Assembly (NCBI GenBank): GCA_965644295.1
Contig: CBFFRP010000425.1
Location: 111,187 to 175,186 of the forward strand
Direction: 5' to 3'
DNA from: Paraphysomonas bandaiensis
Taxonomy: Eukaryota; Protista; Chrysophyceae
DNA: 64,000 nucleotides
Under the pieces are notes generated by a model, which saw only the letters and a program-made list of their open reading frames with translations, ran no database searches and was not told the origin of the DNA. Made by a program: the position numbers and the translations under genes. Position 1 is the first letter of the stretch. Each line of letters opens with the position of its first letter. This document shows positions 28,359-62,520 of the stretch, in pieces.

Positions 28359-28640
28359 GTCTTTTTATTTAGCAATAGGCGTTAGAAACCTGTGCCAATA
28401 TAGTGGCTAGTTGAATGCTAGACATACTAGTTAGACCTTTACCCATAACTAATCAGCATAAAATTCCATTATCCTACTATTTAACGCTACGGAAGCTGCT
28501 TGTGCGTCACCGCAAGCACCAAGGTGCAACCACTTCCGTTCTTAAGTCGTTAGTGAGTTTCGCCCTGCTCGTGTGTCTTTGGACTCACTGGCGCGTGTTG
28601 TCTGGGGGTCTCTCCTTAAGATAGTTGTTAAGTTATCTCT
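28359..28640 (-). mobile_element. Structured repeat copy 1 (subfamily A); probable 3' end of a truncated non-LTR retrotransposon
   Basis: Core motif at 28491-28537 is shared with the copies at 41.4, 42.6 and 62.1 kb. The upstream frame ends NNYLKERPPDNTRQ*. Confidence 0.6.
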
Positions 28641-28897
28641 TCTCATATAATGTCAAATTTTGATATATAGGATATAGGAGTGACTGGTGAACATATGATA
28701 AACAGATGTTGCTGAGAACAGATATTCATCAGACGTTACATATTACATGAATATGTTGTAAAGAGTTGAGATTAATAATTGTAATTATTACTTGAAAGTG
28801 CATTTTGAACAACGTTCAACAAATCAAAGTTAAGGTTTTAGTGTAGAGCAAGGTTAGCTTCATTGAAATGTCCAATTCTAACAGGATCTATAGTTGC

Positions 28898-29300
28898 CAG
28901 GGCTGCGTAACAATAAATTGCAATTATTTTGCAATTAAATTGCAATTATTAGTTATAGTCGAGGTAATACCAAAAACTGGTAAAGCCCAGTGCCTATTAT
29001 TGTCTAATTAACTTAGTTACTCATTGCAAGCAGGTATAGCATCCTCTTCAACCGTACTTGCATTCCACAGAAATCTATTACAGCGCAAGAACATAAGGGC
29101 CTCTTATCGACGAGGTGCCACAGATTTGCGCAGATCACTCATTTTGAGTTTTGCTCTACTGAAAAGCCTCAAAACACAATTAGTAGTGGAGTAAATATGC
29201 TTCAAGCAGCGGTACTTAGTTGGTTTGGTCGTGCGTATATATAGTCGCTTCTGTTCTTGATGCTCAGATATTTTTCGACTCTCTACTGATGACAGATGGG
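28898..29300 (-). mobile_element. hAT-like DNA transposon remnant (3' end)
   Basis: Terminus CAGGGCTGCGTAACAAT. Decayed transposase C-terminus YRCLKHIYSTTNCV.RLFSRAKL..SDLRKS.APRR*EALMFLR.NR.LW resembles the hAT dimerisation region. Confidence 0.75.
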
Positions 29301-29519
29301 ATATGACTACTAAATTCAACCAAAATTCTAACTACTACCCAGAGCAGGATTTAAGATTTATCGAACAATGCAACTTACAGCTTCAGGGCGCAGATCATCA
29401 TCAACAGTATCAAGGTAATATTATTACTACGTTCCAATTAAATATTTTCAGCAACTCACTGCACCTACAGATTAGATGGACACACTTTGCAGCAGTAATT
29501 GCTCCCAGGCTATCGTGAT

Positions 29520-32500
29520 TTAAGAATATTGCGCTTTTAGCACATTCTTAAGAGCCATTGAAATCAATTTATGTTTGGCCCTTACAGTAACACGGAATCG
29601 ATTTCCAGAAATATCTGCTTCGAGTCTCATCATGACTCCAATCGAGATGTTCCCTCCTCCCTCAGGAGCAGGGGTGCCGGTGCGGAATGATGCGCACCCA
29701 GTCACAGTGAGGTCTGTGTCGAGTCCAGTGGCAAGACCAAGATGCAGTGCGGGTGCGTACACCGACCGGATCTCCTGCATCAGCTGGGCTGTTATCGGGA
29801 CCGCAGAAGAGAACACCTCTTGAACCTCCCTATCCTCGCCCTCAAGAGCCTTCCAGCGCGGCATGAAGTTGCCTTTATCCAGTACCACAGGATCGAAAAA
29901 CGACGTCGCGGTGATAGGCAACCTCAGTGGATACAGGTAGTTGGTGCGGAATCCACTGCTCGAGACTTCGGTGAAAGACACAATGAGTTCCGGCGCGTCT
30001 GCAAAGGGCTTCATACATTGGACTAAGAGTGTCAGCTTTGTCTGGTCTGCAAGAGATATGCGTGACGAGTTCTCCTGCACACAAACACGTCATTCCATAT
30101 TACAAATGTTGATACACACTACCTGTCTCTGCACAGTGATGTAGTCCACAGACTCAGGAATTACAGCCTTCAGGTCTTGAATTTCGTCAGTTCTGTTGTT
30201 GAACACAATCACGATGCGCCCTTGATGGGCTCTGTATTCAGAGGCCACAGTGATTTGAATCACATCATTCTCAAACAATACGGACGGCTTCCCAGGTGGG
30301 CTCACCACACATGCATTGAACCACCTCTTCAAAGACGGTAGGACATCGGCTGATAGACCAGTGGGAGCTGACGACCCACCACCAGTGGACGGCCCATCAT
30401 CGTCGTCAAGAGAAAGCAGGTCAACTTCCCCTGTCGCAGCCTTAACAGGTGGTTCTTCTTCCTCATATCTATTTGACACCTCTTCTTCGTGCCTCTCCGG
30501 GCGGTTCGGTTTCTCAGTCTGCCATGCAGATTTGTCAGTGGTACTCTCCTCGCCCTTATTCAGACGGCTCAGCAAAGCGTTATCCCTGTTCTCCGAATAC
30601 ATGGGCATAGTGTTTAGTACATTCTCCATAATCTCTTGACCCACTGTAGGTAAACGCATGTATTCGCACGCTCTTTGCTGCAGTTCAAGGTGACCTGATG
30701 TTGACTGCTTCTGAAAAATATCCATGATCACATCGTGGCAATCGGGATAAAGATTCATTATCTTTGCGTATGCAGTCAGTAGTAGAGCGCAGACTTTGAT
30801 ATCGCAGCGGTGAAAATGCTGCTGGAGGGCAGCAAACTGGTCATAACCGGACATACCAGCCTGCAGTAAACAGATTTAGAGATAGATTCACACCATATCC
30901 AACAGTATACAAATAGTGGCTTACCTTCTCGCAAATATTGACACCAAATTCACCTAGCACATATCCAGCAAGCGCAACTGCAGTCTCTGGTGCATACTTG
31001 CTCTGCACAATGCCCATCATCTTCTCCGCTGCGTACTCTTGGAGATCCACATTGTTAGTAATTATGTGCACTATACGGTGCCATACATCCTCAGAAACAA
31101 AGTCACCAGCCACCATGATCACCTTCATGAATATATCAGAACGTTAAAAATAAATACAATATTACTCTACCTGCACCATGGTGTCTAGATACCATTGTAA
31201 CTGACTTGCGAATTTCTCCGCAAGAATAGCAATTTTGACCACCATATCATCCTTAATTGAGACGTCGGCGGACGCAAGGTTTAAGAGTAGTTCTCCCACC
31301 ACTTCTTCGGCATTCGTACGGTCTGTCATGACAAAGAGCAGATCCAATGCACGTTTACGCACAGACACGTCAGCATCCTTAAGAGAGTTGATAACGGTCG
31401 CCTGGTGGGGCTGGGTAGGGGTGGGACCGTCCAGTCTGGCTAGCCTGCCCATGGCTTCCAACCCAAGGTATCGGATATTAGCCTCTTTAACGGCAATAAA
31501 TCGACCCATTAGAGTAACCACTTGCTCTTTTATCTCTGGGTCACTGTCAGTAGAATAAGAGATAACAAGATTGCACGTTTCAAAGAAGATTGCGTGCTCT
31601 GCGTTGCTCTTATTCACTGTGTCGCTACTGGCGACTTCGCTGCGTGCTATTAGTTTACGAATTACATCGTTAAGGGACTCGAGAGTGGATGGCTCAGTGG
31701 GGCAACGAAAGTACTGAAGGAAACGAAGACATTTTACCAGTAGCCAAGGACTTGGAATTGTATAGTACGTGTAGTCAGATGTCAACTGTCGAGTGATTAG
31801 AAGGCGCTTTAAAATTTCCACAACATAAGGGACCGCTCCATCATACTCCGCAGGATTACTTGAAGCAAAGGAGAGAAGAACACTCATAGCAGACGTTACG
31901 ACGCCAAGGTCACGGTCCGCAAGTAAGATAGCAAATTGGTCTACCCAATCACTGACATCGATGCACTCCGGGTTAGTTCGGTAGAGACGCAACAGACAGA
32001 GAAGTGCCTTCTTGCGAATAGAGCACTTCACTGCCCTTTCCTCTTCAGGAGACTTAATTAGCGTCGGGTTCATGAATTGATTGCTTGCATTGGGATTCGT
32101 AATTAGCTTCTGTACGTCGGGGCAGATTGATTCGGCTAAATCCATACCACCAATATTGGCCACTGCACAGAGTGCAAGACTCGTTCCATAATGCAAGTTT
32201 CCAATAATATCATTACGCATCGAATTGACAACGAGAGTCATCAACTCATCACCTGGTTTCAACAGCAATGCAACAGCCATATATCCCACACTCTTCTCTT
32301 GAAACTTCGTTGAAGATAGCAAACTTATGATCTCCATATGACCAAAATCCACCTCATATCCGAGCATGTATATGTAGCACATCTTCCATATGTATTTCTT
32401 CTTCTGATAAGAGTTCAGAGAGGAAGAAGAAGTGAACTTAACTCGAATATTTGCTAGTTCTTTATCCACACGGATCCTCTCCTCTTCTTTGCTAGGAGCA

Positions 32501-32550
32501 TTCCGTATATCGGATATGAAGTTATGCAGGCCTCGGGGTTGAGTTGCCAT
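29520..32550 (-). CDS. AP2A: AP-2 adaptor complex alpha subunit
   Basis: RGLHNFISDIRN, RVDKELANIR, YQKKKY, LGYEVDFGH, PSPWL, ELQQRACEY and an appendage domain; three introns. Confidence 0.96.
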
Positions 32551-33096
32551 GGTACAATAGAGCTGTCACGTTCAACTAATATCAACTGCAATGCAATATC
32601 AGTGAATAAACGATGAAATCGATTATAGACACTGTGTAGAACCAGTAGACGTGCAATGTACGTGTATATGTATGTATATGTCTATAATATTAGCAGCATG
32701 TATGTATGTATGTGTGTGTGTATGTGTGTGTATGTATGTGTCAAAAGATAACAACATGTGTGTGTATCCTGATAGTCATGTTTCTACATCCTGCTGATGA
32801 TGAGGACGAACCGATCCACTTCACTTCATATCTTTAGTAGACAGTGAAGGGATTTTCAGTTCATCGCTCAACGGGATAGTTTTTAAATTGCAGGGCTTAT
32901 ATATGGGGGATTTATGCAGGAAGTGATGATATTGTTACAAAATAAGGGGTTTTGTTTGTAAGATGATTTGAATCATGGCTTCAGTGCAGTTAATATCATA
33001 ACAACATCATATATCAAGTAAGTTAATTAATGGGCCGTAGTAGCACAGATCGCTAAGATCATTGGATGCCGTTAAATTAGAGACAAAGAGGTCTCA

Positions 33097-35708
33097 ATGG
33101 AGTCCATTTATCCGAAGCATTCAGAGGAGAGCGCGTCGCTTGAGGCGCAGATACAGGAAGCTCGACGACGAGCTGAAGATTTTACTAAATCACTGCAGAA
33201 TGCTCGAAAGGCAGAAGATGAATCCATGAGATCCGTGGAAGAGGAAAGGAGGCGCTGGGCGGCGTCGTATGAAGAGAAAACAGCTATGGTTGAACAACTG
33301 CAGAGGGAGCTGGCGTATACAGTGGAAGCTCTACATGTTCAAAGGAGTGTTGATAACTCGCTTTCAAAGTCTCGTGATGAAGGGCTTCCTCATACGATAA
33401 CTGATGACAACAGTGGTCGAAATGCTTCAAATGGTAGAAAGCATGACCGCAATTCAGAGTCACTCCATACTTCTGGGCCAACTCGTAGAGAATCCCGCAG
33501 GCACTATGACACGAATGATTCGTCGTATCAGGTTTCATCTTCGGTATACGACGTACAACGTAATCAACATCAATCTAACCGAGAGGCTGATGTCAATTAT
33601 GCCGCTATGTATCATGCTGCTGCCTCTGAAATCGCATCTTTGAAACGGAAATTAACTGATTCGGAAAGTGCTTTCCGAAGTGAGATACTGGAATTGAAAC
33701 AAGAGCTCGAGAATATGCGGAGCGCATGGAGAGATTCAGAGGGAAAACTTCAGTTTAGAAATACCCAGGTATAAGCATTGATACATATATGATTACATAT
33801 ATGATAAGCACATACTACTTCGCTTGCCATCTACTTACTATGCTTCCCGATTTTGCTAGATTGCAATGATAAAGTAATTGCTATTTGCTCTAGGTCCGTC
33901 AGTATGAAGTTGAACGAGAGGCAAGAGATAAAATAGAGTCAGATCTGCGAAGTCAAGTACGGCAGTTAGAAAACATACGGATGTCTCTTGAAATCGATGC
34001 TCGGGTGCACAAAGCTGGGATAGAAGAGAGCACCAGTACTCTAAAGCTAGAGATGGTGGCTATGGAGAAGCAGAATATGGAGTTGGCTCGCAAAACTGAG
34101 AACTTGGAAAACCTAGTATCCACCCTTACAGAGGAACGAAATAGGCTGAGTCGTTTGGTGGAGGATAGTGTTCGGGTTAACTCTGAAAGATTCGTAGAAA
34201 CGCGATCTGGGCGAACGCAGCTCATCGACAATGGTGTCACGGAGTCCACTTCTGTCAACTCTAGTCACTCAGTGAGTAAAAATATTGGCACTACAGCGAA
34301 TTTCCCTAGAGATTCTGTTGATAAATTTACTCAGGTGAAGATATTTGTAGAGTATATCTTGACACACATCTTTGTTATGTTTGAAATTAGTGTGTGCAGA
34401 GTCCGGCACGTGAATCGTCTCCGTCTCGACAATATTCCCCAGATAGATCCCGAGAGGATAGGGCTGATGCACATTTGGTTGGCATTCCATCTTCTCACGA
34501 CAGACAAAAAGTTGGTAAATCAAATTTGCAAAGAGAATATACACTGAGTGAACGAGACGATGCGCAGTGTCTCGTTACCAATGATTATATTTCTGATGAA
34601 CATTTCGATGACACGAGTACATCCGTGCTGAATGAAGGTGGTGACGCTTGCCCGCCACCTCCAATATCATCTGGAACACAGACGGGTGTTGTGGTGGATC
34701 ACAAGTCCATTGGAACAGCCACTCATTCGATACTGGACATGCAAGCTTACAGTCCACCGAGGGTGATGTTACAGCAACATCAACGGGTTGTCGGAAATTC
34801 TCGTGTCTCGGATGTCGTACACACCAGCACAAATAAAGCAAAGGTCATGTCGTTTGATTCCGAGGTTGGCATGGACGACGGGAGTGGAGATGACGGCCGA
34901 GTCAACAGTCCGGAGAGATACACGAAACAATCGTCGCGTGTTGCTTCACCTCAGCCTTCGGGAAGTAGAAATTCCCCGTCAGCAAAGTCTGTTCAGGTGT
35001 GTTATCGCTATTTAGTTCGATATGAAATCCTATATGTTAATACGTTCACGTCAGTCCCGCTTATCTTCGAGCCCGCAAAGTTCTCCCAAACGTCGACTTC
35101 TTGGGCAGAGATCGACTTCTAAGGTGCATGACGTGGCAGGGTATGAGGCCGTCCCTGTGTCCCTTCCATCACCTAGCAGTCGTGGACATTCTGTAAAACG
35201 AGCGAAGACTCCAGTTAGCCGTGTGGTGAATGCTAAAACTGGAGTTCGAAAAGGTGTGATGCAGGAGTCCAATCGAGTTAAAAAGACGACTGGGACGAGT
35301 GCAACACAACGTGCGCGAGGAGTTGTGAACAAGCGAACAAGTAATTCCGACGGCCGGCCAGGAAGCCGGGCGCAAACGCTATCTCGAAATATGTCTTCTA
35401 CTGCGAGTATTCGTAGTACTACTCCGCCTGTTCGCAACCCAGAAAGAACTGTACGGAGCCAACGACGTAGCGCCTCAGCCGCAAGCTCACGCACGCTAAC
35501 TAAAACAACAGCCACCACGCCTACGCCTACAAGAACGCCTCTCGCTCGCCGACAACAGAAAGAAAGCCGGAATAACACTGTTGCTGTTGGCACACAAAGG
35601 AAAACACGCACTCCTATTGTTAACAGGACTCTCAGTGGTGATCGGCATGTTCGTAGACACGAGGAAGTATCGCTGTCACTGAATTCAACTGATGCTCCTT
35701 GGGGTTAG
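33097..35708 (+). CDS. Coiled-coil protein with a long basic S/R/T-rich disordered C-terminus, function unknown
   Basis: Four ORF segments can be linked by GT-AG introns. The true start may lie in small upstream exons (~32.8-33.0 kb). Confidence 0.65.
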
Positions 35709-35838
35709 CTAAATTAGAAAGTGTTTATTTGGTGTGTAGAGTATGTGTATTGTTAAGTAATAACTTCGTTTCGCCATTAGAAATGAATCCTGTAGTAATG
35801 TCGTGCTCAGGTAATGTTGTATATGTAATAAGGGTGAT

Positions 35839-36250
35839 CAGGCTTGCGTAACAATTAATTGGAATTTAATTGGTGACAGGTGTCCAACAGTAAAAATTGC
35901 AATTATTAATCAAGCATCCAATCATTGGCAATGCAATTAATTGCCTTTAATTCTATTGATAGATTTTAGAATAACTTTATTAACTATAATCTCATCCAAA
36001 GAAACATCAACAATTTCACGCAGAAACATCAACATTTCAAGTGTCGAGGTGTCATTCGCTTGCGTAAATAATGTAGTCGTAACAATCGTAACTCGCAAAC
36101 ATTGGTAGTGCTATACAAATACTTCATGCAACGATATCGTGTTGGTAGTTTGATGCGTGCCTTTTGGCGCTTTCGGTTGTATTTAAGTAAACGAATGGCT
36201 TCGTTTTCCTCCTCCTTATCTTTGTCTACATCAAGTTCCCTGTACGTCAT
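35839..36250 (-). mobile_element. hAT-like remnant, same family as 28898-29300
   Basis: Terminus CAGGCTTGCGTAACAAT; frameshifted YRCMKYLYSTTNVCE...LRKRMTPRHL. Confidence 0.75.
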
Positions 36251-36275
36251 TTATCAGTTATTCTTCCCTACCGCG

Positions 36276-36416
36276 CTGGTAACCGTTAATGGCCCATTAA
36301 TGGTAGTCCAGTTCCCGGCAATTATAATGGCATTAATAAAAAATATCCCGACAATTATAATAGCCATTAATACCTACTAACTTAAAGTAGATAATACCGC
36401 TCATAATAGATAGTGT
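36276..36416. mobile_element. Terminal fragment of the second hAT family (see 48583-49789)
   Basis: ctggtaaccgttaatggcccattaatggtagtccagttcccgg...acctactaacttaaagtagata matches 48589-48750. Confidence 0.85.
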
Positions 36417-36915
36417 GAATAATGTATGAATGTAGTGCTTGTGTACTATGCCAAAGCTGTACGAGAAGCAATGTAGACGAAGAAATATCGAACGGTGAAA
36501 TAAATTAGCTTTGCAAAACTTTACAATTGCTTATTCTTTTGAAATGTGTTTTCGAACTCCCTACAAGCTACTAGTGAACAGGGTACAAAATAATATAACA
36601 ACGTAATATTAGGCGATATCACAAAGCAGAATGAATGAGGTAAATGTACTAAATTATTCAGTGATTACACCATGTCTGATTATTTACGCTCGCCTCGTCA
36701 TGTTGTAGTATTGTAACGGTTTCCACGTGTGCGCATCTAACCAGCATTGCATAACAGCAGGTTCAAGGAGTTGCAAGCATAGGACATTAATAATGTGCTT
36801 TAGCATAGGTGTGTTAGCAACAGTCATACGCCCATAATATCTAAAAGTACACAACAAAATTGCACTAATTCCCGAGATTCGCTGAGAAGCATCATATATC
36901 CCACGTAGATAAAAA

Positions 36916-37715: not shown

Positions 37716-38090
37716 GTGAAAAGTGTTCTATACGGCAGTGGAGTGTTCGACTGCAGGATCATGATATGGAACACAGTTCATTCCAGAGCAGTCCGCAGTG
37801 CTGTAGGCTAGAGGCGCTACACAGCAGCAGCAGCGTACCATACAGCAGCAGTCACACCACTTGTACCGACGTATACTGTTGTATATCGTGGAATACAGTG
37901 TTTGACATGGAATACGTGAAAATACATTGCAACTGGTTAAGTTGTCAGTGGAATGCGATACTGCTGCTGTGGACTTCTATATATACCTTTGACTTCAATG
38001 AAGTCAAGAAGTGAGCCTCTATTTCCCTATCATATCATGATATCACCCCGTGATTTGTGAAAGTGACGAAGTTCAATAGGGTGGGCACAG

Positions 38091-40405: not shown

Positions 40406-41386
40406 CATTAGCAGTGAAACTTAAATTTTTGAAGCAGTTTATCTCCCAACATGTGTGGTAATTCTTCATTATACCTTTCATTGACGCAACATGTTATATA
40501 CATTGAATATGTTTTGCACAGGCGTTAATTTCTGAGGCAATAATGCATCGAAGCCTTACGTGATTATTTGAATTAAGTAGAAGACTATCACATGAAGTAT
40601 TTCGTCAAGATTTCAAGTCTTCTGCGCTACCGGACTGGATTACCGGATCACATTATTCAGGAACACTTGAAGTAATTGATCCCTTGACGTGATATGAGTT
40701 CTTTACGATATCCATTTCCTTTCAATTGTTGGTATTGTAGTCCGTGTGGTTACTTCCATCCGCACTATCTGGGGCTTGGAGAAGTCTCATAATTTTCTTT
40801 TAGTTTCGTTATTTATGGGAGTTATCGCTCTCACAATTTGCTTTCTGAGGCATTCATAGTTGGAATACGTATGTTTCTTTAAGATTGGACTGTAATACGT
40901 AGTCTAAAATGCTATATAGCTATAACTCTGAAACTGAAGTATTATGATGATTCAAGATACGGAAGTTGACCAGTGTTTGACATGAAAGAAATATAAAATT
41001 ATGTTGTTGATATATATGTTTTACATGAGAACACACAACTGTGTATGCTATAATAGTCGTATCTATCGCCATAACTTCTTTTAACTATCTAAGGTATAAA
41101 ATTACCAAAATTCAATATTCATAACCAGATTAGAAATTGACTTCTTGCTCTTTGTGGCTATGTGATTGGCTTGAAATTCATTTATGTTATGAAACTATAT
41201 GTTACTTATATATTTTGACCTTCACCTCTCTGGTGGTTAAGTGCTTCGATCTAAGAAGCGCAAGTTATTTTCTTTCATATGTAGCCACTATTTATTCTTG
41301 GAGCATTCATTTAGTGTTAAGTTCAACATATAGCATGACTCAAGACAGGTCGATAATAATTTCATTAACCAGCACCTTATTTTATG

Positions 41387-41875
41387 GTAGTTAATGTCTG
41401 ATTATTAGCAATAGGCGTTGAACAGGGTCAATGCTTAACTATGATGTCCTACTATTTAACGTTACGAAAGCTGCTTGTGCGTCACCGAAAGCACCAAAGT
41501 GCAACCACTTTCACTCTAACACTCAAACGCGGAATGTTGATGTACTCTGATATCTGCTGACTTCAGGATTTTAGATTCCTTAAGAGGTGAACAGCCCGGA
41601 TGTTTGACTTCAGCAGGCAGCCCAATACCCCGGATGTCCTTGAGGTGGGCTCATTTCGTCAGGGTCCAATGACGTCTACACAAGTGGCGCTAATTAGTGT
41701 CCCTTGTACCACACTAGCATTTGGCTATATATGAGCTATATGAGCTATGAGTGGGTATAGAACAATATCTGCGGACTATATATTTTGTGGCTCACGTAAG
41801 TTTCCCGGAGAAATATCTCCGGTGTTTATCCCCCAGAGCACCACGAATAGGTGCGAGTCCGACTATGTTGAGGGT
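41387..41875 (-). mobile_element. Structured repeat copy 2 (subfamily A) with GC-richer upstream remnant
   Basis: Core at 41466-41512; tail aacgcctattgctaataatcagacattaactac. The upstream boundary is approximate. Confidence 0.6.
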
Positions 41876-41941
41876 ATTTTATGGTAGGACACGGATACTT
41901 GTACTCTAGTGTACTAGATTATACAGTATAGTTATATTTAA

Positions 41942-42051
41942 CCACGGGCAATAAGGAGGCTATATATCGTCCCGCGCTCAAAATTTTGAAACGAGGGCGA
42001 AAAGGCCGAGTTTTAAAATTTAGACAAGGGACGATACTCCTTATCCCTAGG
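41942..42051. mobile_element. Foldback MITE flanked by TTAA (piggyBac-like)
   Basis: ttaa|CC..ggg..ataaggag..tatcgtccc..aaatttt // aaaattt..gggacgata ctccttat ccc..GG|ttaa. The right end is duplicated at ~42064-42079. Confidence 0.6.
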
Positions 42052-42583
42052 TTAAATTGTAGCTTATCCCTAGGTTAAACTTAATATTAGATTGCTTGTT
42101 GAAATAAGAAATAGGTGTTTCCTGATTAGCATTAAGAAAACAAATGAGTATTCTTATTGTTTCAAATGAATGGTATGTATACTGGCTGTGTATGCTTTGG
42201 GAATAACAATCGCACTATAGGTCAACTCAAACAATAAACCCCCAAATTTATATATATAATAGCTACAACAAATGCATTCCAATCACAGAAGGATACTGAT
42301 GAAATAGCAACTGAGAGGAGTTGAAATTCGTACATAAGTGTGATGATGAATGTAAACAGTTGTAGTCGCACGAAAGGCTTCTTATTGCCTTATTTAGCAT
42401 CATCACATTTATATACAGTGCGCTTAACCTCCTCTGTAGTGCACCTGATTAAATGATGTGAGTATGATATGAGGTAGACTATATCCTCATAAGCACAATG
42501 TAACCTGAACTCTAAAACAACTGGATGCCACTGCCCTTTACCATCTATACAGCATCAGATATGGTACTATACTCTCCTGAGTG

Positions 42584-42865
42584 AGAATATCTGATTATTA
42601 CATGAGAACGGTTGTGTACAGAAACTAGTTTTACATCTATAGACTAACTAATAACTAGACTTGCTATATACGACTAGTGGCGGGCAACCGTCTCGGGACT
42701 GCTTGTGCATCGCTGCGAGCACCATGGTGCAACCGTCCCTTGTAGATACTCTCCAGAAATATTCTTGAAGTTGTTTCGAAGTCCTGGCTATGAAGATCGA
42801 TCGCTTGCACTGACATCATTATGATCTTTTACATCGTCAGACGAAGGGAGGAATATTATTTGAAG
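42584..42865 (-). mobile_element. Structured repeat copy 3 (subfamily B)
   Basis: Core at 42695-42739; stem arms at 42604-42614 and 42685-42694; termini nearly identical to 62042-62205. Confidence 0.65.
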
Positions 42866-43071
42866 TGTCTAATGATTTAACTCATGACTGTGGTTTCCCT
42901 ATAATAGTGTACTGTAATGAAATGACTGTCAATATCATAATCTTAGCATCTGTGGAACCGAATATTAAAGTTGAATGTCTATATTTGCCCGGTGCTGATA
43001 TCAGCGCCCTGTTGAGACAAAATCAGGTAAAAAAAAAGCTTTTTTTGAGACAAAATGGGGATAATATATTT

Positions 43072-43204
43072 CAGGACCTGGTAACCATTAATGGTCTAGT
43101 TCCCGGCAATGATAATGGCATTAATGTAAAATGTCCCGTCAATTACAATGGCATTACCATTAATGGCTACTAATGCCATTACCATTAACGGCTACCAGGC
43201 CCTG
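43072..43204. mobile_element. 133-bp MITE of the CAGGGCCTGGTAACC hAT family
   Basis: caggacctggtaaccattaatgg ... ccattaacggctaccaggccctg; no clear target-site duplication. Confidence 0.8.
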
Positions 43205-43211
43205 AATATTA

Positions 43212-48582: not shown

Positions 48583-49789
48583 CAGGGCCTGGTAACCATT
48601 AATGGCCCATTAATGGTAGTCCAGTTCCCGGTAATTATAATGGCATTAATGAAAAATGTCCCCGCAATTATAATGGCCATTAATGGCCCTTTAATGGCTA
48701 TTAATACCTACTAACTTAAAGTAGATAGCACCATTCATATAATAGATAGTGTTGTGCTCCCTTAATTACTAATTTTTAGTTAAATAGCAGACTACAAATT
48801 TTAACTACTTCTCGCTCTCTACTGGTACATCATGATCTTCTTGCAGGGCTTCATGGAGGGTATAAACATCCCACAACATGTAATTGGCTCGTAGGAATGC
48901 TTGCGTTCGGGGAAAGGTATGGATGCATCTCTGGAAATTCTTGTAGCAGTATATTAAATAACTGACGGACTTTTGATACTAATTGGTTCCATCTCTTTGT
49001 AAGGCGAGCGTAACACTCTGTAACTTTACAAGTTGGGGCAAATATTGTTTCAGCTTTAAAAGTAAGCTGGAGTTAGAATCTGGAGTAAGGAGATACTTTC
49101 TTTCTTTTATAAAAGACAATAAATCGCCCCCGTGAAGTCTTTCATTTTCCAAAGTTCTGTCGAGTTCCTTGCGCCAAGATAAATCCGCATGTTTGGCACC
49201 CTTCTTGGTTACATGATTCACACTAGTCGTGTAACCTCGCTGTATATCTTGTTTGAGGCGATCATTGCACAACGAACAAATATGATACAGAGCACTGAGA
49301 GGATTCTCTGAATCCACTCGGAAGAAGACTCAGACTGTAAATTACACTGTCATCATATTCGCTTAATATACTGGATGGTATAATATTGTGTACTGCGGCT
49401 TCTTTCAACTCTGAGGAAAAATAGATTTTTATGAATGTTTTAGGTGAAATATGCATATTTGCAATGATTATTTTAGAGTTTTGTATATATGGGTACGTTG
49501 CTATGCATATTGCTCGTCAGAAAACTATTCTCTAAATCTACAGAGCATTGAGAAGATAGTGAACAAAGTTGCCACAAGTGCCTGTAGAGTTGCATGAACA
49601 TTGTTGTCTTATATTGTTCAGAGCTTCTTCGGAGTATAGAGGAGATACTATATTCTATATTAACTTAAAAACACTCAGTTCTATATATAGCAGTACAGGT
49701 CATTAATGGTATCCCATTAATGGCCCATTAATGGTAGTCCGGTTACCGGCAATTATAATGGCATTACCATTAATGGTTACCAGGCCCTG
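48583..49789 (-). mobile_element. Internally deleted hAT transposon with intact ends
   Basis: 23-bp perfect TIR CAGGGCCTGGTAACCATTAATGG and 8-bp TSD TTACAGAT (48575-48582 and 49790-49797). Inside: BED-finger-like CSLC..KQ...GY....HV...H and frameshifted LQSVTLALQ...VRQLFNILLQEFP...YLSPNASI. Confidence 0.92.
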
Positions 49790-50305
49790 TTACAGATGAT
49801 ATGTGTCAACATGTGCTGAAAACAATCAGTTTTTACATACAACAGTTAGAGCTCATCGTCTTAAAGCACTATATTTCCTTAAAGCACTAAAAGGTAGCTG
49901 TGCCATCCATGTTTGTGCCGATGGCAGCGCCAGTTCTTGCCTCTTTGATGAAGTTTTTGTCTCTTTGACGAGATAGCTAGAAAAAAAATGGTATAATGAG
50001 ATAACTCAACCATTTTGACAAGGTTGAATAACATACTCCACATTCGCTGAGTCTTGAGTCATATAAAGTTAATACTAAAACCTTTAAGTTATTTTCACAA
50101 CTAAAGATAACCATTATTGACACAAACTAAAAAAATTAAATTTGATTTTCTGATAGCTGCCAGCAAATACATTTTCCTTGTAACGCATGTTACATTGTTA
50201 AACATATTTAACAGAAAAATAAATGCATTAATTTTCATGCACAATGTGCTTTAACTTCTAATACAATAACAAAAAATATACACTTATAGCAATCAAACGA
50301 GCAAA

Positions 50306-51907: not shown

Positions 51908-52112
51908 TGTGGTAGACTATAAATCCAACTATCTCAGCAGCTCACCCGTCCCTCAATATACTCAACAACACAACCTATACTCGACACTACAGTGGGAGAG
52001 GTATTGGCTAGCCCACTAGATTCACCACATCTACGCCCCAATCATCACTACTCCCGTCTCTATTTACAAACATACCTCGTAAACAGAAAGACTATTTCCT
52101 CAGTAACTGCTG

Positions 52113-53031: not shown

Positions 53032-53222
53032 CACATACAGATAAAACGGCTGAGGGGATATGTGAATTGTGGTATTCAAATGTAGCATATCCATCATAGT
53101 GTTTTATTAGTACTGAGACGGCGAGACTATTGCTGCATTAAAGTCACTTGTAGTTGTAGTTAGCTGAATTATACATTGTGTACTATATTTGTCTGTCACT
53201 GTTGTAGTTAGCGTCTGCAGGT

Positions 53223-56200
53223 ATGTCTAATCTTGGAGACACTGCGGGCTCAACGGCGTCGCAGCCGTCAATGGCCTCCACGTTCAAGGGACGTAATACT
53301 GCTAAGTCAGCAGATGAATTAAAGCAAGCTCGTGAATCGCGTGCTGCTGAAGCTCTTCGAATGAAAGATGAGCAGCTTCGAATATTAGCACAACAAAACG
53401 AAACTTTAATAGCTTCACTCGATAAGGTACTCTTGTGCTGTTCATACGTCCTCATATGAATGTTAATGTTACACTTTTCAGGTGGAGGAAGAAGCCAATA
53501 CCATACAAATGGCCAAACTGTCTGTGGAACAGGAGAATAGAACCCTGCGAGATAACAATTTCGAATTGCAGAGTAAGTCACGTGCAGCAGAAACACAGAG
53601 CAAGCGTATGCAAACAGAAGTTGCGGAGAAAGAAAAACAGTTACGCATTATGACCGACCAGAACTCTGAGTTACTTAGATTATTAGAAAGTGAAGAAGGG
53701 TTGACTGCACAATTGCAAAGTGAGGTATCTGAACTGCGTAGTGAGCTTGATGAACTGCGACAAAAACACGGTTCTCTTTTGACGACGGCAAAAACTCACG
53801 AAGAAATGTCCACTAAAGCAGCACGTGAAGGTCAGCTTCGTGCAGAAGAAATTCGACTCCTTCGGGCCGAAACAGAACAATTAAAGCAACAGAATTCTGA
53901 ACTTAAAATGAAGACCCAAGTTGAGGTCGAGGCATTGCAGGAACAACTTCGTGTGAGGAAAGAGAAACAATACCAGCTTCTCGAGAAGCTCCAGGCTCAA
54001 GAGGAAGCAAAGCGTCAAGCAGAAGACCAGGTGACGGGAATGGAAGAACAGCTACGAAGTCTTCATGCGAGGAATGTGGAGCTTGAGACTCAACTTCAGT
54101 TCGAGGGACGCATCAAACAAAACCTAGAGGAGACGAATAAGGATCTTCAGATGGAGAATAACAATATTCACTCAGCCAATTCAGAGCTTCAGACCAAAAT
54201 AGATAAGAGTGAAAAAGAACGTCTGAGAATGGAAGCCGAAGCTAGAGATAGTGGTGAGAAGCTTCGAGAGATGGCTGAGAAGGTGTTTCAGCTCTTGGAA
54301 AGGCTTAAATTGGCTGAGCTTGGAAAGACGAAGGCCATGGAGGCGCTCAAGAAAAAGGAACTTGATATGGTGGCACTCCAGAAGAAAAATGCTCGTCTGA
54401 TTAAAGAGAGCACAGAAGAGGGTCGAGCGCGAGTTAAGGCAGAGTTGGATGTGAAAGTACTGCAGGATCAAGTCCGAGCGCTGAAAAAACACAACTCCCA
54501 ATTGACTCAAAAGTGCAAAGAGGAGGCACGGGATAAGGTCCGCGCCACAGAAGAGAATGAGCAATTGAAAGAAAAGATGACAGTGACTGAGTCTCGTCTA
54601 TCGTTTTTGCTGAACAAGGTGCAGTCTGACGAGGAGGCTCGTGTCATCCAGGCGGAAGACAGAAAGAAGTTGGAAGCCCAAGTTCAGACTCTGACTGCCA
54701 AGTGTGAGGAATTCCATCATAAATTGTCGGAGACTGGTGAGAGCAATCGTGTCATTACCCAGGCGATGCGTCTCAAGCAGGAAGAGTTGAATGATATATC
54801 GATGAAGTACGAGGCGTTGTTACGAGAGTGTGAGTCGCGGGAGCGAAATGAAGACAGGGATGACAATACAGGCGCTTCACAGGACCTATCAGGAGCACGC
54901 CCCGGTGCACCTGACGACATCGATAACGTCCGACTGAATGAAGGGCGTGGTCGATTCTACGTTGAAGTCAAAACTGTCGGGGGTGGCTCCATGCTATTAC
55001 TCAGAGGGCGAAAACCGTTGTACAGAGACTGGCTCGATAGGCAGTCGGTAAACGATTTCCTTAAGCGCTGTCAGAAAACTACTAGATTTAGGGATATGAT
55101 TATCGAGAAGCTGGCATCCCTTTATGGATTGCTGATGGTCGAGGAAGAGGAGAAGAACAAAGTCGTCAATGAGGTTCAGGAAAGGGAGAAATTAATTGAC
55201 CACCTTCAAAAGAAACTGGTTTATATTCAGGACTGTTTAGCCACAGAAGAGGATGCAAAGCGACGAATGTTGCTGCGGTATATTCATTCTGTGAAAGAGC
55301 ATGCAGAGGCTGCCTCCGATGGGCTTGGAGGCGTGCTTCAGCTTCCAGAGTCGAATATTTCAGACGAGGAAGTGCATGCTCTTGCTGCGTTGTTGAGAAA
55401 TAATCATGCTATTGAAGAACTCAACCTCCGTGGAAATAATATATCAGACGATGGTGCAAGAGCTCTTGCTGCTGTTTTATCTGGACGCAGTGGGTTGAGG
55501 CTAGTGGATCTTCGTGCGAATAAAATAAGTAAAAGTGCCATCCGCATTATTGCAGAAGCGTTGGAGAGATCAGAGCGTGTGCGTCATGTTTATGTGCATG
55601 CTGGTGGAAAGATAGAGGCTCTTGGCACAGGGAAGTGGGCCAAGAGCCGAACGTCTCTCATGAATACCTCCACTTCGATAGAAGACAGAGAGGAAGGAAG
55701 TACAGGAAAACAAACAATGAATGTCGAAACTGTGTGTGTTGTTGATATCAGAGATAATGTTCCTGCCAAAGCCGCTCTGCCCTTTGATCCAAGTATGGCT
55801 GACTTTACGCAGTCAGAGAGTATAGACTCGTCAAACAAATCGTTCTCGCCAAAGAAAATGCTGGAAAGTACTGGTGCCCCGCCGAGAAGTGCGAATGGGA
55901 CTCGTTCCGAGCCCCACCTGAGCACTGTAAGCAAGACGCCAGCGAAACAGACTCAGGTCTCTCAAACATACTCCGTTCCGTCAAAGACTGACATCAAAAA
56001 GCAACAGAAAAAGGTAGGTTAGTTAGTCGTAGTTATGCTATGCTAAGCATACATTGCAGATACGGAAAAAGAAAGAGCTTGCCATGAAAGAGAGCTCTTG
56101 GCAGGGAAGAATGGGTGGACTTGAGCAAAAGAACGACAAGTCGAAGAAGAGTGTGCAGAGAGGAGAGCTTCCGCCGATTCATCTTGATTCTGAGAGTAGC

Positions 56201-56553
56201 ACTGTACGTATTTGATTTTGTGTATTGATATTAAGTAATTCCATATTTTGCAGTACGAAGAAGGCTCTGATAGCAGAGCTCATTCAGCACCCGAGGGTGT
56301 GCACGATACCGCCACGTTTGGTATATTGGGTGACAGTGGAGTACTAACCGCCAATCGGCCTGGAAGTCCAGAGGATGTTGTTAGACAAGCCATTGTTAAG
56401 GCCCGCGGGAAAGCGGGAAAGAATAAACCTGTCAGCCAGTCCGAGAAACGATTATTACAAAGGTAACTTCCGCAATAATCACTTCATTGTCCTCCTAATA
56501 ATTCATTGTGTTGTAGCCCTTTCGCACAGCCCATCGGCAACAAGAAAAAATAA
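53223..56553 (+). CDS. Long coiled-coil protein with RNI-like leucine-rich repeats
   Basis: About 600 aa of coiled coil, then IEELNLRGNNISDDGARALAAVL and LRLVDLRANKIS; four introns; TAA at 56551-56553. Confidence 0.8.
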
Positions 56554-57150
56554 AGCTGCAATTGTATATGCAGAAACTGTTATAGCAATTACATAGATGT
56601 CATCATTCATTGTTGTCTGTCATCACCTAGCGGTACTATATAATTAATCGTTAATAAGTGTGTGCAGTTACCAAATTTGCTTCTATTTCTATAGTTAAGT
56701 GTTGGATAGTACCATCGCTGATGCAATATGTTTTCTTTACATCGCTGGAAATTCTATTTGGTGTACTGTAATTTGATTGTATTTGCAACATTAAAGTCGA
56801 TTAATGATACTTACGAAACTGATATATCGAAATAGGAAATAGTATACTAGATTACACAGAATACGATGCTCTTACCATGTTGAGTTTTGCTGTTTGTGAA
56901 CAATTAAAAGCTGTAGTTTCCAAGATATTAGAACTATATCCGTTACTCAAAGAATACAGTAGTAGCTAGCTGTAGTATGAGAACCAATAATATGATAGCC
57001 ATTGTAGTGATGAAACTGAAATATTCTGACTGTACAAGATAGTGACGATGTAAGATCGTACTAGAAATGGTTCGTGTAGCAGAGATAAAAAGAGTTGGTG
57101 AATGTCAATGAATGAAGTATGGTAACTCTTATAATTATATTATATTCTAT

Positions 57151-57325
57151 ATAAGTGTTAACGAAGGTCTTATTACTAAAAATGTCACTTTCTAACATAC
57201 CACTTACCACCATGGGTATTGGCTCTGAACGCTCTTTCCCCAAAATAGTAATCCTAATCGTTCTATTATTTTCAATTAGTTCTGACTCCGAAACGCCTAT
57301 TGCTAATATTAAGACATTAACTACT
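57151..57325 (+). mobile_element. Very short 3' remnant of structured repeat subfamily A
   Basis: aacgcctattgctaatattaagacattaactac (57292-57324) matches the tail of copy 2; the core motif is absent. Confidence 0.5.
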
Positions 57326-58142
57326 TCTACTATTTTTGTGCATTTATCCTAAAAGGTGAAAAAAAATCATACATATACGTACATGTACGTATGAAGTTTC
57401 AGCTATAGAAATATATAACTCAATAACGAATAGTGTATTGCAAGCTCCGAGTACTTTCCTAACCTTTTATAACACTACTCTCTTGATTGTACATATCCTA
57501 AATCTAAATTAAGTCGTTATAGTACGGATAAGGAATCTGATCGTTCTTCACATCATTGCTTACCAACAGGGAAGACCTGAGTGGACGACGCTGGACAGAG
57601 TTGTCTCGATACTTACTCCACTATTCTTGTTTTCTGTCAGATTTTTCATAGATCTCTCACCTCCTGTGTTTCCTACGCTGCTACTATCTGGCTCTAGTCT
57701 CGATGTCAACGTTAGGCGCCGAGCGTAAACTAAAAAAACACCTTCGAAACAGGCGCTGATCGCTGTCACGAGCAGAAAAGAATCGTATCATGACTATCTG
57801 TGCATGTAACTGCACATGAAACACATATAGTTTATACCACTACACTGTCTGATAGCGATATCCATGAGGACATTGATGTTCACTCTGCAGACTCAATGGT
57901 GAGGTGGTCTTGATCAGCTGAAGCTGTTGAACGAGGTATGTACTACTTCAGTTGATCAAGAGCATATTGAGTAGCAACACCAATGAGCTCACAATAACCA
58001 GCCGGCTAAAGTAAAATTCCATGTTTGGATATTGTGATCCATGCCAACTGAGGGGCTCTCCGTAGCGTGCGTATGTTTCGTATGTATGCTAGCTATCGCA
58101 TACACACATCCAGGGCGGTGGGTAAAAAAAGATAATATCTAG

Positions 58143-58227
58143 ATATGACATGATGAAAACACCCCTTTTTATAGGAGAAACAGTCAAAAACCAGTGTTTG
58201 TTAAGAAAAGGGGGGTTTCATGCCATA
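58143..58227. repeat. Imperfect inverted repeat (hairpin or tiny MITE)
   Basis: atatgacatgatgaaaacaccccttttt ... aaaaggggggtttcatgccatat. Confidence 0.55.
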
Positions 58228-58897
58228 TATATTGGCAAGATATATGTTGTTTTATATTGGATGGATAATGTTGGATCCAGGACAGCATTTGAATGACAAC
58301 AAGCACTCAGCCTACTCGACGTAGGCTTGGTAAAACTCAAGATAGCAGTATTATGACTCGAGGTTCCTAATATCCAGGATATAGGCCGCAATATTATAGG
58401 AAAGACATGATTGATGAGTCATACCGTTGTATTTTCGTGTTGTGTGTTATGATGATGGTTGTATTTGCAGAGGAACGGTAGGAATTCCTACCCCAGAACT
58501 GGTACAGGTGTACTTGTAAGACCCTCAATCTAGCGGTACACATCCAGCGGTTTATACATAAAATATATGCGTACTGCTGTACATGTATGTATGTAGAGTA
58601 TGTACTGCTATATATGTACTGTACTACTGCTGTGTGTTCGGCGGGCCGGAGTATGCAGCAGATTGTGGGTGGCTTCTCCTTTCCAGTGGACCATACTGGA
58701 CATAGCCACACAGCACACAGCACACAGCACAGTGCTGCAGGAACACATTTCGATCTTGTAATTGCATGAACCCAAACCACTGGTGTGATAAACAATTGCA
58801 ATAAACTATTCTGATTAGTCGTTTCCATGTCATTCACAGTTAATCCTGTTGTCTCTTCTGCAGTGCATCAAGATCACATCAACCGCACTGTACATAT

Positions 58898-61456
58898 ATG
58901 GCAACACCAACAGATAACTCCACAAGCAAAGACTCATCAATGGATGTTTCTTCCACAACAAAAGAACTACGATCTCTTCTATCAAAACAATTGGGTGGAC
59001 TCTCTGCTGAGTTGAAGCATATATCAGGAGGGGTCACACAGGGCAATGGAGAGATCGTTACGTGTATCCCTAAAGGAGGACTGCATGAGTTCGTTGCTAA
59101 CACATTGCCGTTAAAAGCTGAGTTTGATGTCATTACATACTATCCGGAGAGTGAGGTTATATGTCTGTATCAAGGCCCAGATAATATGGTGCAGCTTCCA
59201 ACTGCGAACTTTGGACTCACTACAGATGATATTTGGACACCAGCAGAGATGAGCACATACAGTGGTGATGTTTTGTTCAAAAGGGGTTTAGCAAAGCTAG
59301 CTGTAGCAGCTATTTCATATAAAATAAATCACCTCTTGAATACTGGGCCCAAGTCAAGAGTGCGCTTTCAGGCTGATATCCGACCACAAGTATTGAAGCT
59401 GATGGCACGGCGAAAGAATGTCCTTAACTATGTGCGTGCTCGTAACAAAGATGGCAAGAAGGGTGCACTGAGTCCTAGTCAATTTTCGAAGAAAGATATG
59501 CTAATGCGGATTGTAGCTGCTGTGTACAACGAATTCTTGATTGACTTGCCTCACCCAAATCCTGCGTACGTTGCCTCTGACAGTGATTGGGTCAAGAAAC
59601 AGTGTCTGCTAATTGCTGCCTGCTATGAACACGACGCCGATATATTCAACGCGCTGTTGAGAAATAAATCCGACGATAAGGCAGTTGCAACTCATAAACA
59701 GTTGAAAAATGGTGCACACAAAGTAGATGAAAAAGTTCCCAGTTGCTCGACTATATTCGATGAAATTGTGTTCTCTGGATCGATGCCAATGCTACGAGAT
59801 TACATTAACTCCTACTGCGTCTTCACCACTCTCAACCCTTTAGAGTTGGAGTGGAGTGATTTTTTAAAAATGGATATACAGGTAACGTTTAGGTGGTAGT
59901 GTTCAGGTTGTATATGACGTTTATTTTTCAGAACGAAATTGTGGTAACGATTATCAAGAATATGCCATATTATTTTTTGGTTGCTGCAGACGTCACGCTC
60001 CGAGGTATTGCCCAAGTGTATCTCTGTAATCACCCTATTTCTGGACTTTTTTTCTCGATCGGACTAATCATCACAAACCCGCAGTTGTGGGTATATGCGG
60101 TGGTGGGGTGCATAAGTGAAACTGTCACCTCTTGGGTTGTATGTAAAGAGAGCTGGGACAACATTCAATCTGGACTCTGTGGGTATGTATGGTAATTGGC
60201 TGGTAAGTTGTGGATGTACTGATACGTGTTCATTATTCAGATATGATGGAACCTTGGTAGGATGCGCGGTCTATACTTTCGTGTCTTTACAACAGCCGGC
60301 AAGTGTACACCCCAACCTAGTTAACAACGGACTACTTATTGTTTGGTTACTTGCATCTGCTTCTGGAATCGTTCGAAGTGCTTTCTCGAATATGAGCAAG
60401 CTACCAGCTTTGACAGCTGCCTTCAATTTAGTTTCACTGTGCTTTTTCTTTGCGGTGGCAAGAGGTACCTCAGACGCTGCTCATTTGCAATGGTACACAC
60501 CTTATGATACACCCAGCAGCAGCACTAACACTGAAAATGATTCTTCCTCTGATGAAGGTTTTGAACACATGACGGGGTTATACTTTTACGAGTCCACTGT
60601 TCTCGGTGTGGGACAGTTTATGTTCGTGTCGGACACCTTAGGCGCGTTGTTTGTCATTTTCGGGATCATACTGTGCTCCAGAAAGGCGGCCCTCATGGCT
60701 ATTCTTGGATCTATTGTAGGAACTTTTGCAAGTCGATACGTCATGATTATCCCGAGTGCAGCTCATTCAGCCTTGCGTAATGGGTTGTATTCTTATAATT
60801 CAATGGGTACCGCTGTTGCCGTTGCCGGGGATGTGTTTTTTGAATTCAATTTCGGTTCAATGTGCGTCGGTGTCATTGGTTCGATGCTCTGTTCTTTCGT
60901 TAGCCTAGGTGTGCAGTCTTTACTGAATACGGATCAATTGAGCTTGCCAGTCCTCACTGTTCCGTTTATACTTACGACGTGGATAATGATGCTCACAAGA
61001 TCCGAATGGCTCATACCAACAGTTGCTAATGATGTGGACCTGGATGATGCAATGTTCATGGATCGACGACATGGAGGAGATATCGATTGGTTAAAGTATC
61101 AGATGAATCTCAGAATGAATGGGCAGTTAAACAATGAAACCATGACTCATGAGACTTATGAGAGTCCTTTCCACAGATCTGCTGATCGTAGTGGAACTCA
61201 CAGCGGCGACGAAGAGGAAATTTCTTTGTTGTGTGCTGAATCCGACTCTGCAGATGAAATGTTTGAGGCATCTCGAAAGAGTGATCGGTTCCAAAAGTTT
61301 AAAAAAAAAATGTACGAGAAAGTAGATGACGGTGCTTGGTTTCGCCGCAAAAGTAAATTTGTGGCCAACTCGACGCCTGATGAAGATGATATTGAGATGG
61401 GATCAGAAATTTCTAGAAGCTTTCAATCTACAGGTTATGGTACAAATGACACTTAA
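58898..61456 (+). CDS. SLC14/UT-family urea transporter with a ~290-aa N-terminal soluble domain
   Basis: Introns 59882-59931 and 60183-60240. Motifs LRGIAQVYLCNHPISG, GLCGYDGTLVG, LPALTAAFN, GVGQFMF, GLYSYNS and LPVLTVPF. Confidence 0.85.
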
Positions 61457-62041
61457 TCGTGATCAATGTATTGTTAATAATATTATAAAGATTTGCAATA
61501 TGTGTGTAACCAGTGAAAAAGAATTCTTTTTTACGCATACGACTATTACAATGTCAATACATATATAGCTAATTTTCAGTCACAATTAGAATCCTATTAC
61601 TAGCAGCCATGTTGTGTCTCTGGCAGGGTAAGCTAATATTGTATTGTAAATATTGATCAATCGACCGGATAGAGCAACCTACCACTATTGCTAAAAGCTA
61701 ATAATATATTGCAATGAAGTATATTATAGAATATAGCAACTACTACATAGCAAAAGTTTCTTACTTTATAGCTTGTTGAAATGTAGTGGGATTGATTATC
61801 ATGTGACCTCATGATAAGTACTAAAAGCGGACTGTGCGCATATTATATTGGTCAGTATATTCAATAATATTTTGGACCAGTTTAAAGTGTATTGCAATAT
61901 CATGGTTCGAACGCCACCTTGCCATACCAAGAGCCTTGGTATGTGATGTAGTATGCATTGTCATTGTTTAGCTGCTTAATAGAATCTCCTACGTTATGTA
62001 AGCTAGATATATATGTTCATTATGAAATTGTAGGTGCATAT

Positions 62042-62520
62042 AGAACATCTGATTATTACATGAGAACGGTTGTGTCTAGTATTCGTAAGTAGTGTAGCTA
62101 TGGGTTTAATTAACTATGAAATTCGCTATTTACTAAAGAATTCAACCGTCTCGGGACTGCTTGTGTGCATTGCTGCAAGCACCTTGGTGCAACCGTCCCT
62201 TGTAGTGGTGTTTTTCTGGGGGTCTACCTTTGGGCAGTGTTTCTGTGCCGCACGTTACTTGGGGAGTGGAGTGAGTGGCGTGTAAGTGAGAGTTGAGGTC
62301 AGTTACGGAAAGTCGGCTAGTTCCTGTGCTAGGGGTGCTGTCTATGGCAAGTAGCAGTTGTTTCCGGAGTGGATGTGCAGGCCTGGACCGCGGGCGGGTT
62401 CGAGTGGGGTGTTTGGTTCTGGGAGTGGATGTTGCTCGGAGTAGCCGGAGTAGTGTCGGCTTAGAGTCAGTTCTCTGAGTGCGGTGTATCGGGGAGGAAT
62501 GTAAGTGCAGAGCGACCTGA
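62042..62520 (-). mobile_element. Structured repeat copy 4 (subfamily B) with an upstream T/P/R-rich open frame containing GRPPE
   Basis: Core at 62153-62199; stem arms at 62062-62072 and 62143-62152; aagg.agacccccaga.aacac is shared with copy 1. Confidence 0.65.

Follow-up and report, generated by a model that had tools for sequence, protein, structure and literature searches.

A conserved folded motif in the poly(A)-less 3′ tail of LINE and SINE-like elements of Paraphysomonas bandaiensis and its probable part in reverse transcription

A stretch of 64,000 nucleotides from the chrysophyte Paraphysomonas bandaiensis (GCA_965644295.1, contig CBFFRP010000425.1, positions 111,187 to 175,186 of the forward strand; hereafter the window, always at its full length) carries four dispersed copies of a short motif of about 47 nt whose stems change in sequence while they remain paired, and this raises the question of what such an RNA-like motif is doing in a protist genome. 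A sequence-only reading of the window described it as an unrecognised structured RNA, either a self-cleaving ribozyme or a recognition element for reverse transcriptase (RT). All four sequences are present on the minus strand exactly as written there. They are independent retroposon insertions and not free-standing RNA genes, and the motif is the 5′ domain of a ~190-235-nt poly(A)-less 3′ untranslated tail of related long interspersed nuclear elements (LINEs) and of parasitic elements resembling short interspersed nuclear elements (SINEs). Judged from its anatomy and by analogy with known LINE tails, the motif is probably the folded core that the element protein recognises for target-primed reverse transcription (TPRT). 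Of the two functions originally suggested, the RT-recognition type of tail thus holds up and the ribozyme does not, and both the membership of the motif in larger mobile elements and the bipartite nature of the tail had been missed.

The carrier of the motif is an RT-encoding retrotransposon that lacks long terminal repeats (a non-LTR element), in which the motif sits in the 3′ untranslated region (3′ UTR) on the sense strand. In a long copy (L031), an open reading frame (ORF) of 1468 residues with an RVT_1 domain (E 6.5e-15) ends at 9690, the motif occupies 9739-9785, starting 49 nt past the stop codon, and the element ends at about 9923, ~140 nt beyond the motif, at ...CAGACATTCACTA, without poly(A). 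The best matches of this ORF in a PDB sequence search are to LINE-1 ORF2p; an RNase H domain following the RT appears plausible by eye, and none was found by Pfam (E<=1) or by PDB sequence search (E<=10). In the genome to which the window belongs, which was searched for copies throughout (62.5 Mb in 669 contigs), the RT segment has 116 matches, many of them 100% identical and with open frames of up to 3021-3731 residues, and the LINE family has therefore been active recently. Diverged RT lineages at 74, 58, 52, 50 and about 40-47% protein identity are found in the same genome. A metagenome protein from ENA (P0003) is 77% identical to the LINE region preceding the RT and contains an APE endonuclease domain (PF03372); in this protein, the APE domain is itself preceded by a SET domain (PF00856, E 1.2e-8), which would be unusual in a LINE ORF. 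Additionally, marine metatranscriptome contigs from poly(A)-selected RNA (Logan, assembled contigs only) contain the 3′ part of the LINE together with its tail; they break off where the motif begins and where the element stops, as a repeat would lead one to expect.

The way in which the copies begin and end bears the hallmarks of TPRT, namely a shared 3′ terminus, variable 5′ truncation and target-site duplications (TSDs). Across 30 fetched loci, homology beyond the motif extends ~140 nt downstream to one sharp end, ...AACGCCUAUUGCUAAAUAAUCAGACAUUCACUA, without poly(A), and upstream homology varies from 0 to >1500 nt. TSDs of 9-16 bp flank the copies, including three of the four insertions in the window (Table 1) and the loci L005 and L017. 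Location, copy structure, conservation and covariation of the motif are what the sequences show directly.

Several searches agree that the motif is abundant in the genome and specific in the window. A strict core pattern, GGTTGCACNNNGGTGCN{8,16}GCACAAGCAG, gives 805 genome matches as against 0 for its reversed control, and with looser patterns, tied only to the 3′ half of the motif, the counts are 1314 for types 1/2 and 220 for types 3/4. In the window, a degenerate search with the two invariant 5′ blocks returns only the four copies, and a covariance model built from 19 distinct motif copies finds exactly the same four at 62-80 bits, the next match, which is not a copy, scoring 16.6 bits; a marginal match of this model at 22371-22412 was rejected as a motif copy. 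The whole-genome search with the covariance model scored 150 of ~24,900 candidates and is not used as a copy count. A pattern for a further lineage with a ‘GGAAY’ closing stem returned one decayed copy in the genome, and the core pattern had 0 matches in a JGI metagenome scan.

The four insertions in the window (W1-W4) are collected in Table 1. W1, W3 and W4 are 5′-truncated LINE 3′ ends, and W2 is a non-coding SINE-like element. W1 comprises the last ~11 codons and the entire 3′ UTR tail, with 84% identity over 275 nt to the 3′ end of LINE A in L031. Within W4, positions 62214-62465 encode a remnant that is 44% identical to the last 87 residues of the LINE protein P0002; a TSD was looked for at the flanks of W4 and none was found, and its 5′ limit is therefore approximate. 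W2 has a longest stop-free stretch of 52 residues.

Table 1. Motif copies in the window, the insertions that carry them and the parts of their tails (window positions; P1, closing stem of the motif; P4, long-range helix of the tail)
Feature	Position	Strand	Description
Motif copy 1	28491..28537	-	47 nt; P1 GGAAG/CUUCC, extendable to ACGGAAG/CUUCCGU; 80 bits
Motif copy 1 core	28491..28537	-	Within these positions, from GGUUGCAC to CACAAGCAG
Motif copy 2	41466..41512	-	P1 GAAAG/CUUUC; 70 bits
Motif copy 3	42695..42739	-	P1 GGGAC/GUCCC; 68 bits
Motif copy 4	62153..62199	-	P1 GGGAC/GUCCC; CA insertion (2 nt) in the 3′ junction strand; 62 bits
W1	28354..28622	-	269-nt LINE 3′ end, 5′-truncated, family-A-like
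W1 TSD	28340-28353 and 28623-28636		14 bp, ATAACTTAACAACT
W1 tail after motif	28354..28490	-	P4 5′ strand, variable middle, P4 3′ strand, A-rich end
W1 P4 5′ strand	28481-28490	-	GUAGCGUUAA
W1 P4 3′ strand	28375-28385	-	CUAACG-C-CUAU
W1 A-rich 3′ end	28354-28374	-	UGCUAAAUAAAAAGACUUUCA
W2	41388..41874	-	SINE-like retroposon, non-coding, 487 nt
W2 TSD	41378-41387 and 41875-41884		10 bp, CCATAAAATA
W3	42578..42745	-	168-nt 5′-truncated tail, type-3a LINE lineage
W3 TSD	42569-42577 and 42746-42754		9 bp, GGAGAGTAT
W3 P4	42685-42694 with 42604-42614	-	GAGACGGUUG with CAACCG-U-UCUC
W3 3′ end	42578-42603	-	AUGUAAUAAUCAGAU...
W4	about 62038..62486	-	3′ part, ~450 nt, of a diverged LINE with type-4d tail
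W4 P4	62143-62152 with 62062-72	-

W2 is informative about which parts of the tail are kept. Its likeness to LINE A is confined to two stretches, each 94% identical, one being the motif plus 17 nt and the other the last 35 nt; its body is unrelated to LINE A. The LINE and non-coding SINE-like elements carry the same tail. The first ~125-215 nt of W2, in its 5′ head (41651-41874, minus strand), recur at >10 other loci. Short SINE-like tails keep the motif block and the 3′ end block and drop most of the middle, and W2 may be regarded, from sequence comparison, as a natural deletion experiment on the tail. A tRNA-derived origin of the SINE-like elements found no footing, as ARAGORN detects no tRNA in the window and no tRNA match was obtained in Rfam.

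The LINE lineages provide a second comparison, for which tail types were tied to lineages by genome coordinates. Type-3a tails go with LINEs of one lineage, 56-58% identical in protein (contigs C373, C153 and C58), and type-4 tails with lineages at 40-53% (C644, C661, C637, C566, C505 and C77), the motifs lying ~2.1 kb from the RT matches. The protein P0002 shares 41.6% identity with LINE A over 877 residues, and directly behind its stop codon the contig that encodes it (L064) carries a type-4 motif; the stretch from stop codon to motif in L064 is identical to copies in the present genome, for which reason L064 probably comes from the same organism and does not provide independent cross-species evidence. 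Between LINE lineages with only about 40-58% protein identity, a 36-nt core of the motif remains 82-89% identical. When the W3 tail is compared with 3 kb of LINE A, this 36-nt core is the sole significant DNA similarity (89%, E 9e-9), and the 15-nt 3′ ends of the two are 93% identical.

The whole tail consists of three conserved parts with free sequence between them, namely the 47-nt motif, the helix P4 and an A-rich single-stranded 3′ end (AAUAAUCAGAYNUUCA). P4 is a long-range helix of 8-10 bp that begins immediately after the closing stem P1 and finds its partner strand just before the 3′ end; its pairs were read from an anchored pair table, which replaced a noisy automatic duplex search. 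In type 1, GUAG-CGUUAA pairs with UUAACG-C-CUAU; in types 3a and 4d, GAGA-CGGUUG pairs with CAACCG-U-UCUC; and in types 4a-c and 4e, GAGA-N-AACU pairs with AGUU-C-UCUC. Types 1 and 3a differ at both partners in 6 of the pairs. All lineages keep a bulge or 1x1 loop following the fourth pair, with C, U or A as its unpaired base. The sequence inside P4 cannot be aligned from one lineage to another, and most of it has been deleted from SINE-like tails. Of the two stretches in which W2 matches LINE A, the one with the motif takes in the P4 5′ strand, and the terminal one comprises the P4 3′ strand and the A-rich end.

P1 behaves in the same manner as P4, and both helices are supported by compensatory change. 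The variants of P1 include GGAAG/CUUCC, GAAAG/CUUUC, GGAGG/CCUCC, GAGAA/UUCUC and GGGAY/GUCCC, with 4 pairs altered on both sides, which bears out the original observation that the closing stem changes yet keeps pairing; 90.9% of the cells are paired, as against 23-51% when the 3′ partners are slid. Also sustained is the proposal that G-U wobbles favour the minus strand, which is the LINE sense strand: the cells comprise 271 Watson-Crick, 40 wobble and 31 unpaired on the sense strand, compared with 271, 7 and 64, respectively, on the antisense strand. Two further claims about the motif had to be corrected. The junction bases described as invariant are so only among the four copies, since elsewhere GGUCGCAC is abundant and GGUUGAAC occurs in at least 7 copies, which share a diagnostic flank. 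The inner stem said to covary (UCG/CGA versus UUG/CAA) shows one-sided changes that are only wobble-compatible, and it belongs to one of three equally fitting folds. P1 encloses the nearly invariant 36-nt core, for which a three-way junction has the lowest computed energy; in it, P1 continues into a weak 3-bp P1b, P2 (GCAC/GUGC) bears a CUUG-type tetraloop and P3 a GNRA tetraloop. Two other folds fit equally well, with 91-92% paired, namely an H-type pseudoknot (10-14 with 31-35; 22-28 with 43-48) and the small hairpin of the original reading. RNAalifold retains only P1, P1b and P2, and nearest-neighbour energies, which give a rough estimate, favour the junction by about 5 kcal/mol.

Recognition by RT, as originally proposed, fits all of this anatomy, that is, the place of the motif in the 3′ UTR of an RT element, its sharing with SINE-like elements, the truncated copies with TSDs and the conservation of the core. 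In the mechanism we favour, the endonuclease/RT protein encoded by the element would bind the folded core of the sense RNA, P4 would place the 3′ end beside the protein-bound core, and cDNA synthesis would start at that A-rich 3′ end, primed on nicked target DNA; the binding by the protein and the need of the tail for mobility are what we infer here. Elements without an ORF keep the motif, and a role in cis in copying, rather than in translation, would therefore be expected.

Several considerations weigh against this interpretation. The function assigned to the motif draws on anatomy and analogy, and the presence of an APE endonuclease in the LINE would follow from the metagenome relative P0003 and not from a copy in the genome itself. 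The lineages compared were all drawn from a single genome or from metagenome contigs of what is probably the same organism, a set that does not cover conservation across species. The inner fold may be either a three-way junction or a pseudoknot, the inner core being without decisive covariation. The abundant GGUCGCAC variant and the GGUUGAAC variant both weaken helices of the junction model, and the former strengthens the pseudoknot. The only double change in P3 (G-C to A-U) amounts to two CpG transitions. Furthermore, fold energies are no better than those of shuffled sequences on either strand, with z of -0.4 to -1.5 for the motif and of -1.2 to -1.6 for the whole tail, where the antisense strand is similar.

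The recurrent changes at motif columns 29-30, 32-33 and 35-36 (TTGTGG, TTGCAG, GGTGAC, GGCAAC and GATGCA) are likewise all CpG transitions, suggesting that CpG decay occurs in this genome; covariation at those columns should be read with care.

Other explanations of the same features can be weighed on the ends of the copies, the Rfam scans and the pattern of conservation. A self-cleaving ribozyme in the 3′ UTR is highly improbable, even though a compact junction-type fold with near-invariant unpaired bases would suit one and the 5′ ends of copies cluster at the 5′ edge of the fold, as cleavage 5′ of the ribozyme in the style of hepatitis delta virus (HDV) would give. These ends do not share one site but range from -11 to +28, and most copies, including LINEs with intact ORFs, run uninterrupted across the motif. 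Since every full tail carries the whole motif and the same ~140 nt downstream, the RNA template was uncut inside the motif when it was copied. The junction strands G, U, CA and A contain no hammerhead, twister or pistol core, and Rfam 15 contains no ribozyme family that matches, either at the gathering score or at E<=5, in line with the earlier remark that the motif resembles neither hammerhead, HDV, twister nor pistol. A cmscan against Rfam had been suggested as a way of recognising an already described motif, and no family matches: there was no match in the window at the gathering score, none for 41200-43000 (covering W2) at E<=5, and nothing but microsatellite-driven miRNA noise for 8 loci at E<=1, the UnaL2 and R2 RNA element models giving no match in the scans of the window and the loci. 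The same clustering of 5′ ends could reflect protection or processing of the RNA, in which the fold would block 5′-to-3′ decay or mark a cleavage site at the base of P1; the fold, alone or bound by protein, would then keep a tail RNA without poly(A) stable and available for reverse transcription, and recognition by RT would lie elsewhere (e.g., in the 3′ end block) or would be an additional task of this fold. Of 27 truncated rows of types 3/4, 7 have their first nucleotide at -1/0 and 4 at +5, and the interval -14 to -7 is empty; for type 1, the beginning lies 1-2 nt ahead of the extended P1 in 4 of about 10. Stalling of RT at the structure fails to explain this cluster, because an RT moving 3′ to 5′ has by then already copied the fold, and the lack of poly(A) in the element would also suit a protective fold. 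Against this, the 5′ junctions were tallied by eye on printed rows and in small numbers, they scatter over about 10 nt rather than on one nucleotide, microhomology can shift the apparent ends, and no exonuclease-resistant RNA family was matched in Rfam, which together leave this explanation unlikely. Loci with a 5′ junction at, or 1-2 nt before, the base of P1 include C73:112121, C114:32554, C141:215307, C17:8629 and C28:78702. It is similarly improbable that the core, as a compact pseudoknot or junction, additionally sets the 5′ boundary of the RNA, whether by acting as a plug that resists exonucleases or is shielded by protein, or by marking a place for processing at the P1 base. If it did, this boundary would let tail-only RNAs survive and be copied, thereby explaining the cluster of 5′ ends, and the core would correspond, in a retrotransposon, to the exonuclease-resistant RNAs of viruses, kept across LINEs of about 40-58% protein identity.

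The position of the motif relative to the stop codon and the youth of the copies each invite a further explanation. In all type 3/4 lineages, the TAA stop lies exactly 11 nt before GGGAY, as might be expected if the fold acted on termination or captured the nascent protein in cis instead of serving as a priming signal; nevertheless, this spacing is 49 nt in type 1 (family A) and SINE-like elements devoid of an ORF keep the motif at 94% identity, which makes a translation-linked element very improbable. The likeness of the tails could, alternatively, stem from recent common descent or from the swapping of tails between elements without any function, given that the >1500 copies are mostly dead on arrival and very young, with many identical sequences among them, and that the fold energies are unexceptional. 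This, too, is very unlikely: the rest of the UTR is unalignable at 40-58% protein identity while the 36-nt core is not, P1 and P4 have changed by compensatory pairs, and unrelated SINE-like bodies keep exactly the two blocks.

A core that is recognised by the element protein would belong to a kind already known, the LINE 3′ tail common to SINEs, and the module itself has no counterpart in Rfam. Stringent-type LINE proteins bind a cognate 3′ stem-loop (PMC4176376, PMC1636434); in the L2-clade LINEs of eel and zebrafish, the ORF2 protein binds this stem-loop, which partner SINEs share (PMC1636434, PMC4176376, PMC3747384). The present tail resembles those of eel UnaL2/UnaSINE1 and zebrafish ZfL2-1/-2 in being a structured 3′ UTR element independent of poly(A), in being common to an RT-encoding LINE and non-coding SINE-like elements, and in occurring in 5′-truncated copies with TSDs. 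While recognition by the cognate LINE protein is established for UnaL2 and ZfL2, it is proposed here by analogy. The UnaL2/ZfL2 tails consist of a single short hairpin beside terminal repeats, whereas the present tail combines a multi-helix core, P4 and an A-rich end, and its sequence shows no detectable relation to the UnaL2 or R2 elements. The tail is thus unusually elaborate, and it is conserved across deep LINE lineages.

The 3′ UTR RNA of R2 elements (Bombyx and avian; PMC11194090, PMC12222951, PMC12180492) offers a second parallel, as it has a compact protein-bound core, pseudoknotted in birds, to which the present core may be likened, and after the core an A-rich single strand leads the 3′ end into the active site of the RT, an order similar to that seen here. 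Binding and priming determinants are distinct in R2, which we count as a further likeness. R2 is, however, a site-specific element of 28S rDNA with a restriction-like endonuclease, whereas the present copies are dispersed with TSDs of 9-14 bp and the closest relative of the LINE carries an APE-type endonuclease. In the trypanosomatid pairs ingi/RIME and L1Tc/NARTc, as here, an autonomous LINE is accompanied by abundant non-coding derivatives, and L1Tc carries an HDV-like ribozyme head (PMC3185411). RIME and NARTc arose from their LINE by deletion and have both of its ends, whereas only the two tail blocks are shared here in the part of the LINE that was read. Small self-cleaving ribozymes (hammerhead, twister, pistol, hatchet and HDV-like) are similar to the motif in size, in junction or pseudoknot topology, in conserved unpaired bases and in association with retroelements, and differ from it in that the motif matches no family model, lacks a conserved catalytic core and is copied uncut.

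The value of this system lies in its being natural, recently active and high-copy, with >1500 tail copies and LINE open frames of 3000 residues or more. Template choice by APE-type LINE proteins is, to our knowledge, understood for few animal elements (L2-clade fish LINEs, R2, and L1 via poly(A)). Evolution has in effect run deletion and swap experiments here, as several LINE lineages and SINE-like families keep the core, P1, P4 and the 3′ end, and the core, P4 and the 3′ end together make a ready minimal template for binding and TPRT assays. In addition, the motif provides an annotation signature for a repeat that otherwise resembles an orphan ‘RNA gene’ near host genes. W1 lies ~0.9 kb downstream of an alpha-adaptin-like host gene (29520-32550, minus strand; Adaptin_N E 2.3e-77; Alpha_adaptin_C) on the same strand and may sit in or near its 3′ UTR.

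Other repeats are also present in the window. A second dispersed family, rich in CCATTAATGG palindromes, occurs at 36276-36405, 43064-43159, 48589-48739 and 49707-49802 and is possibly a miniature inverted-repeat transposable element or a foldback element. A 120-nt tandem repeat of about 6 units, 97-98% identical, extends over 62989-63850 inside a 350-residue minus-strand ORF (62916-63968) that has no Pfam match. Finally, a long microsatellite array with an 8-nt period (ACAT-type) runs from 15623 to about 17300, and a 96-nt tandem repeat occupies 2526-3179.

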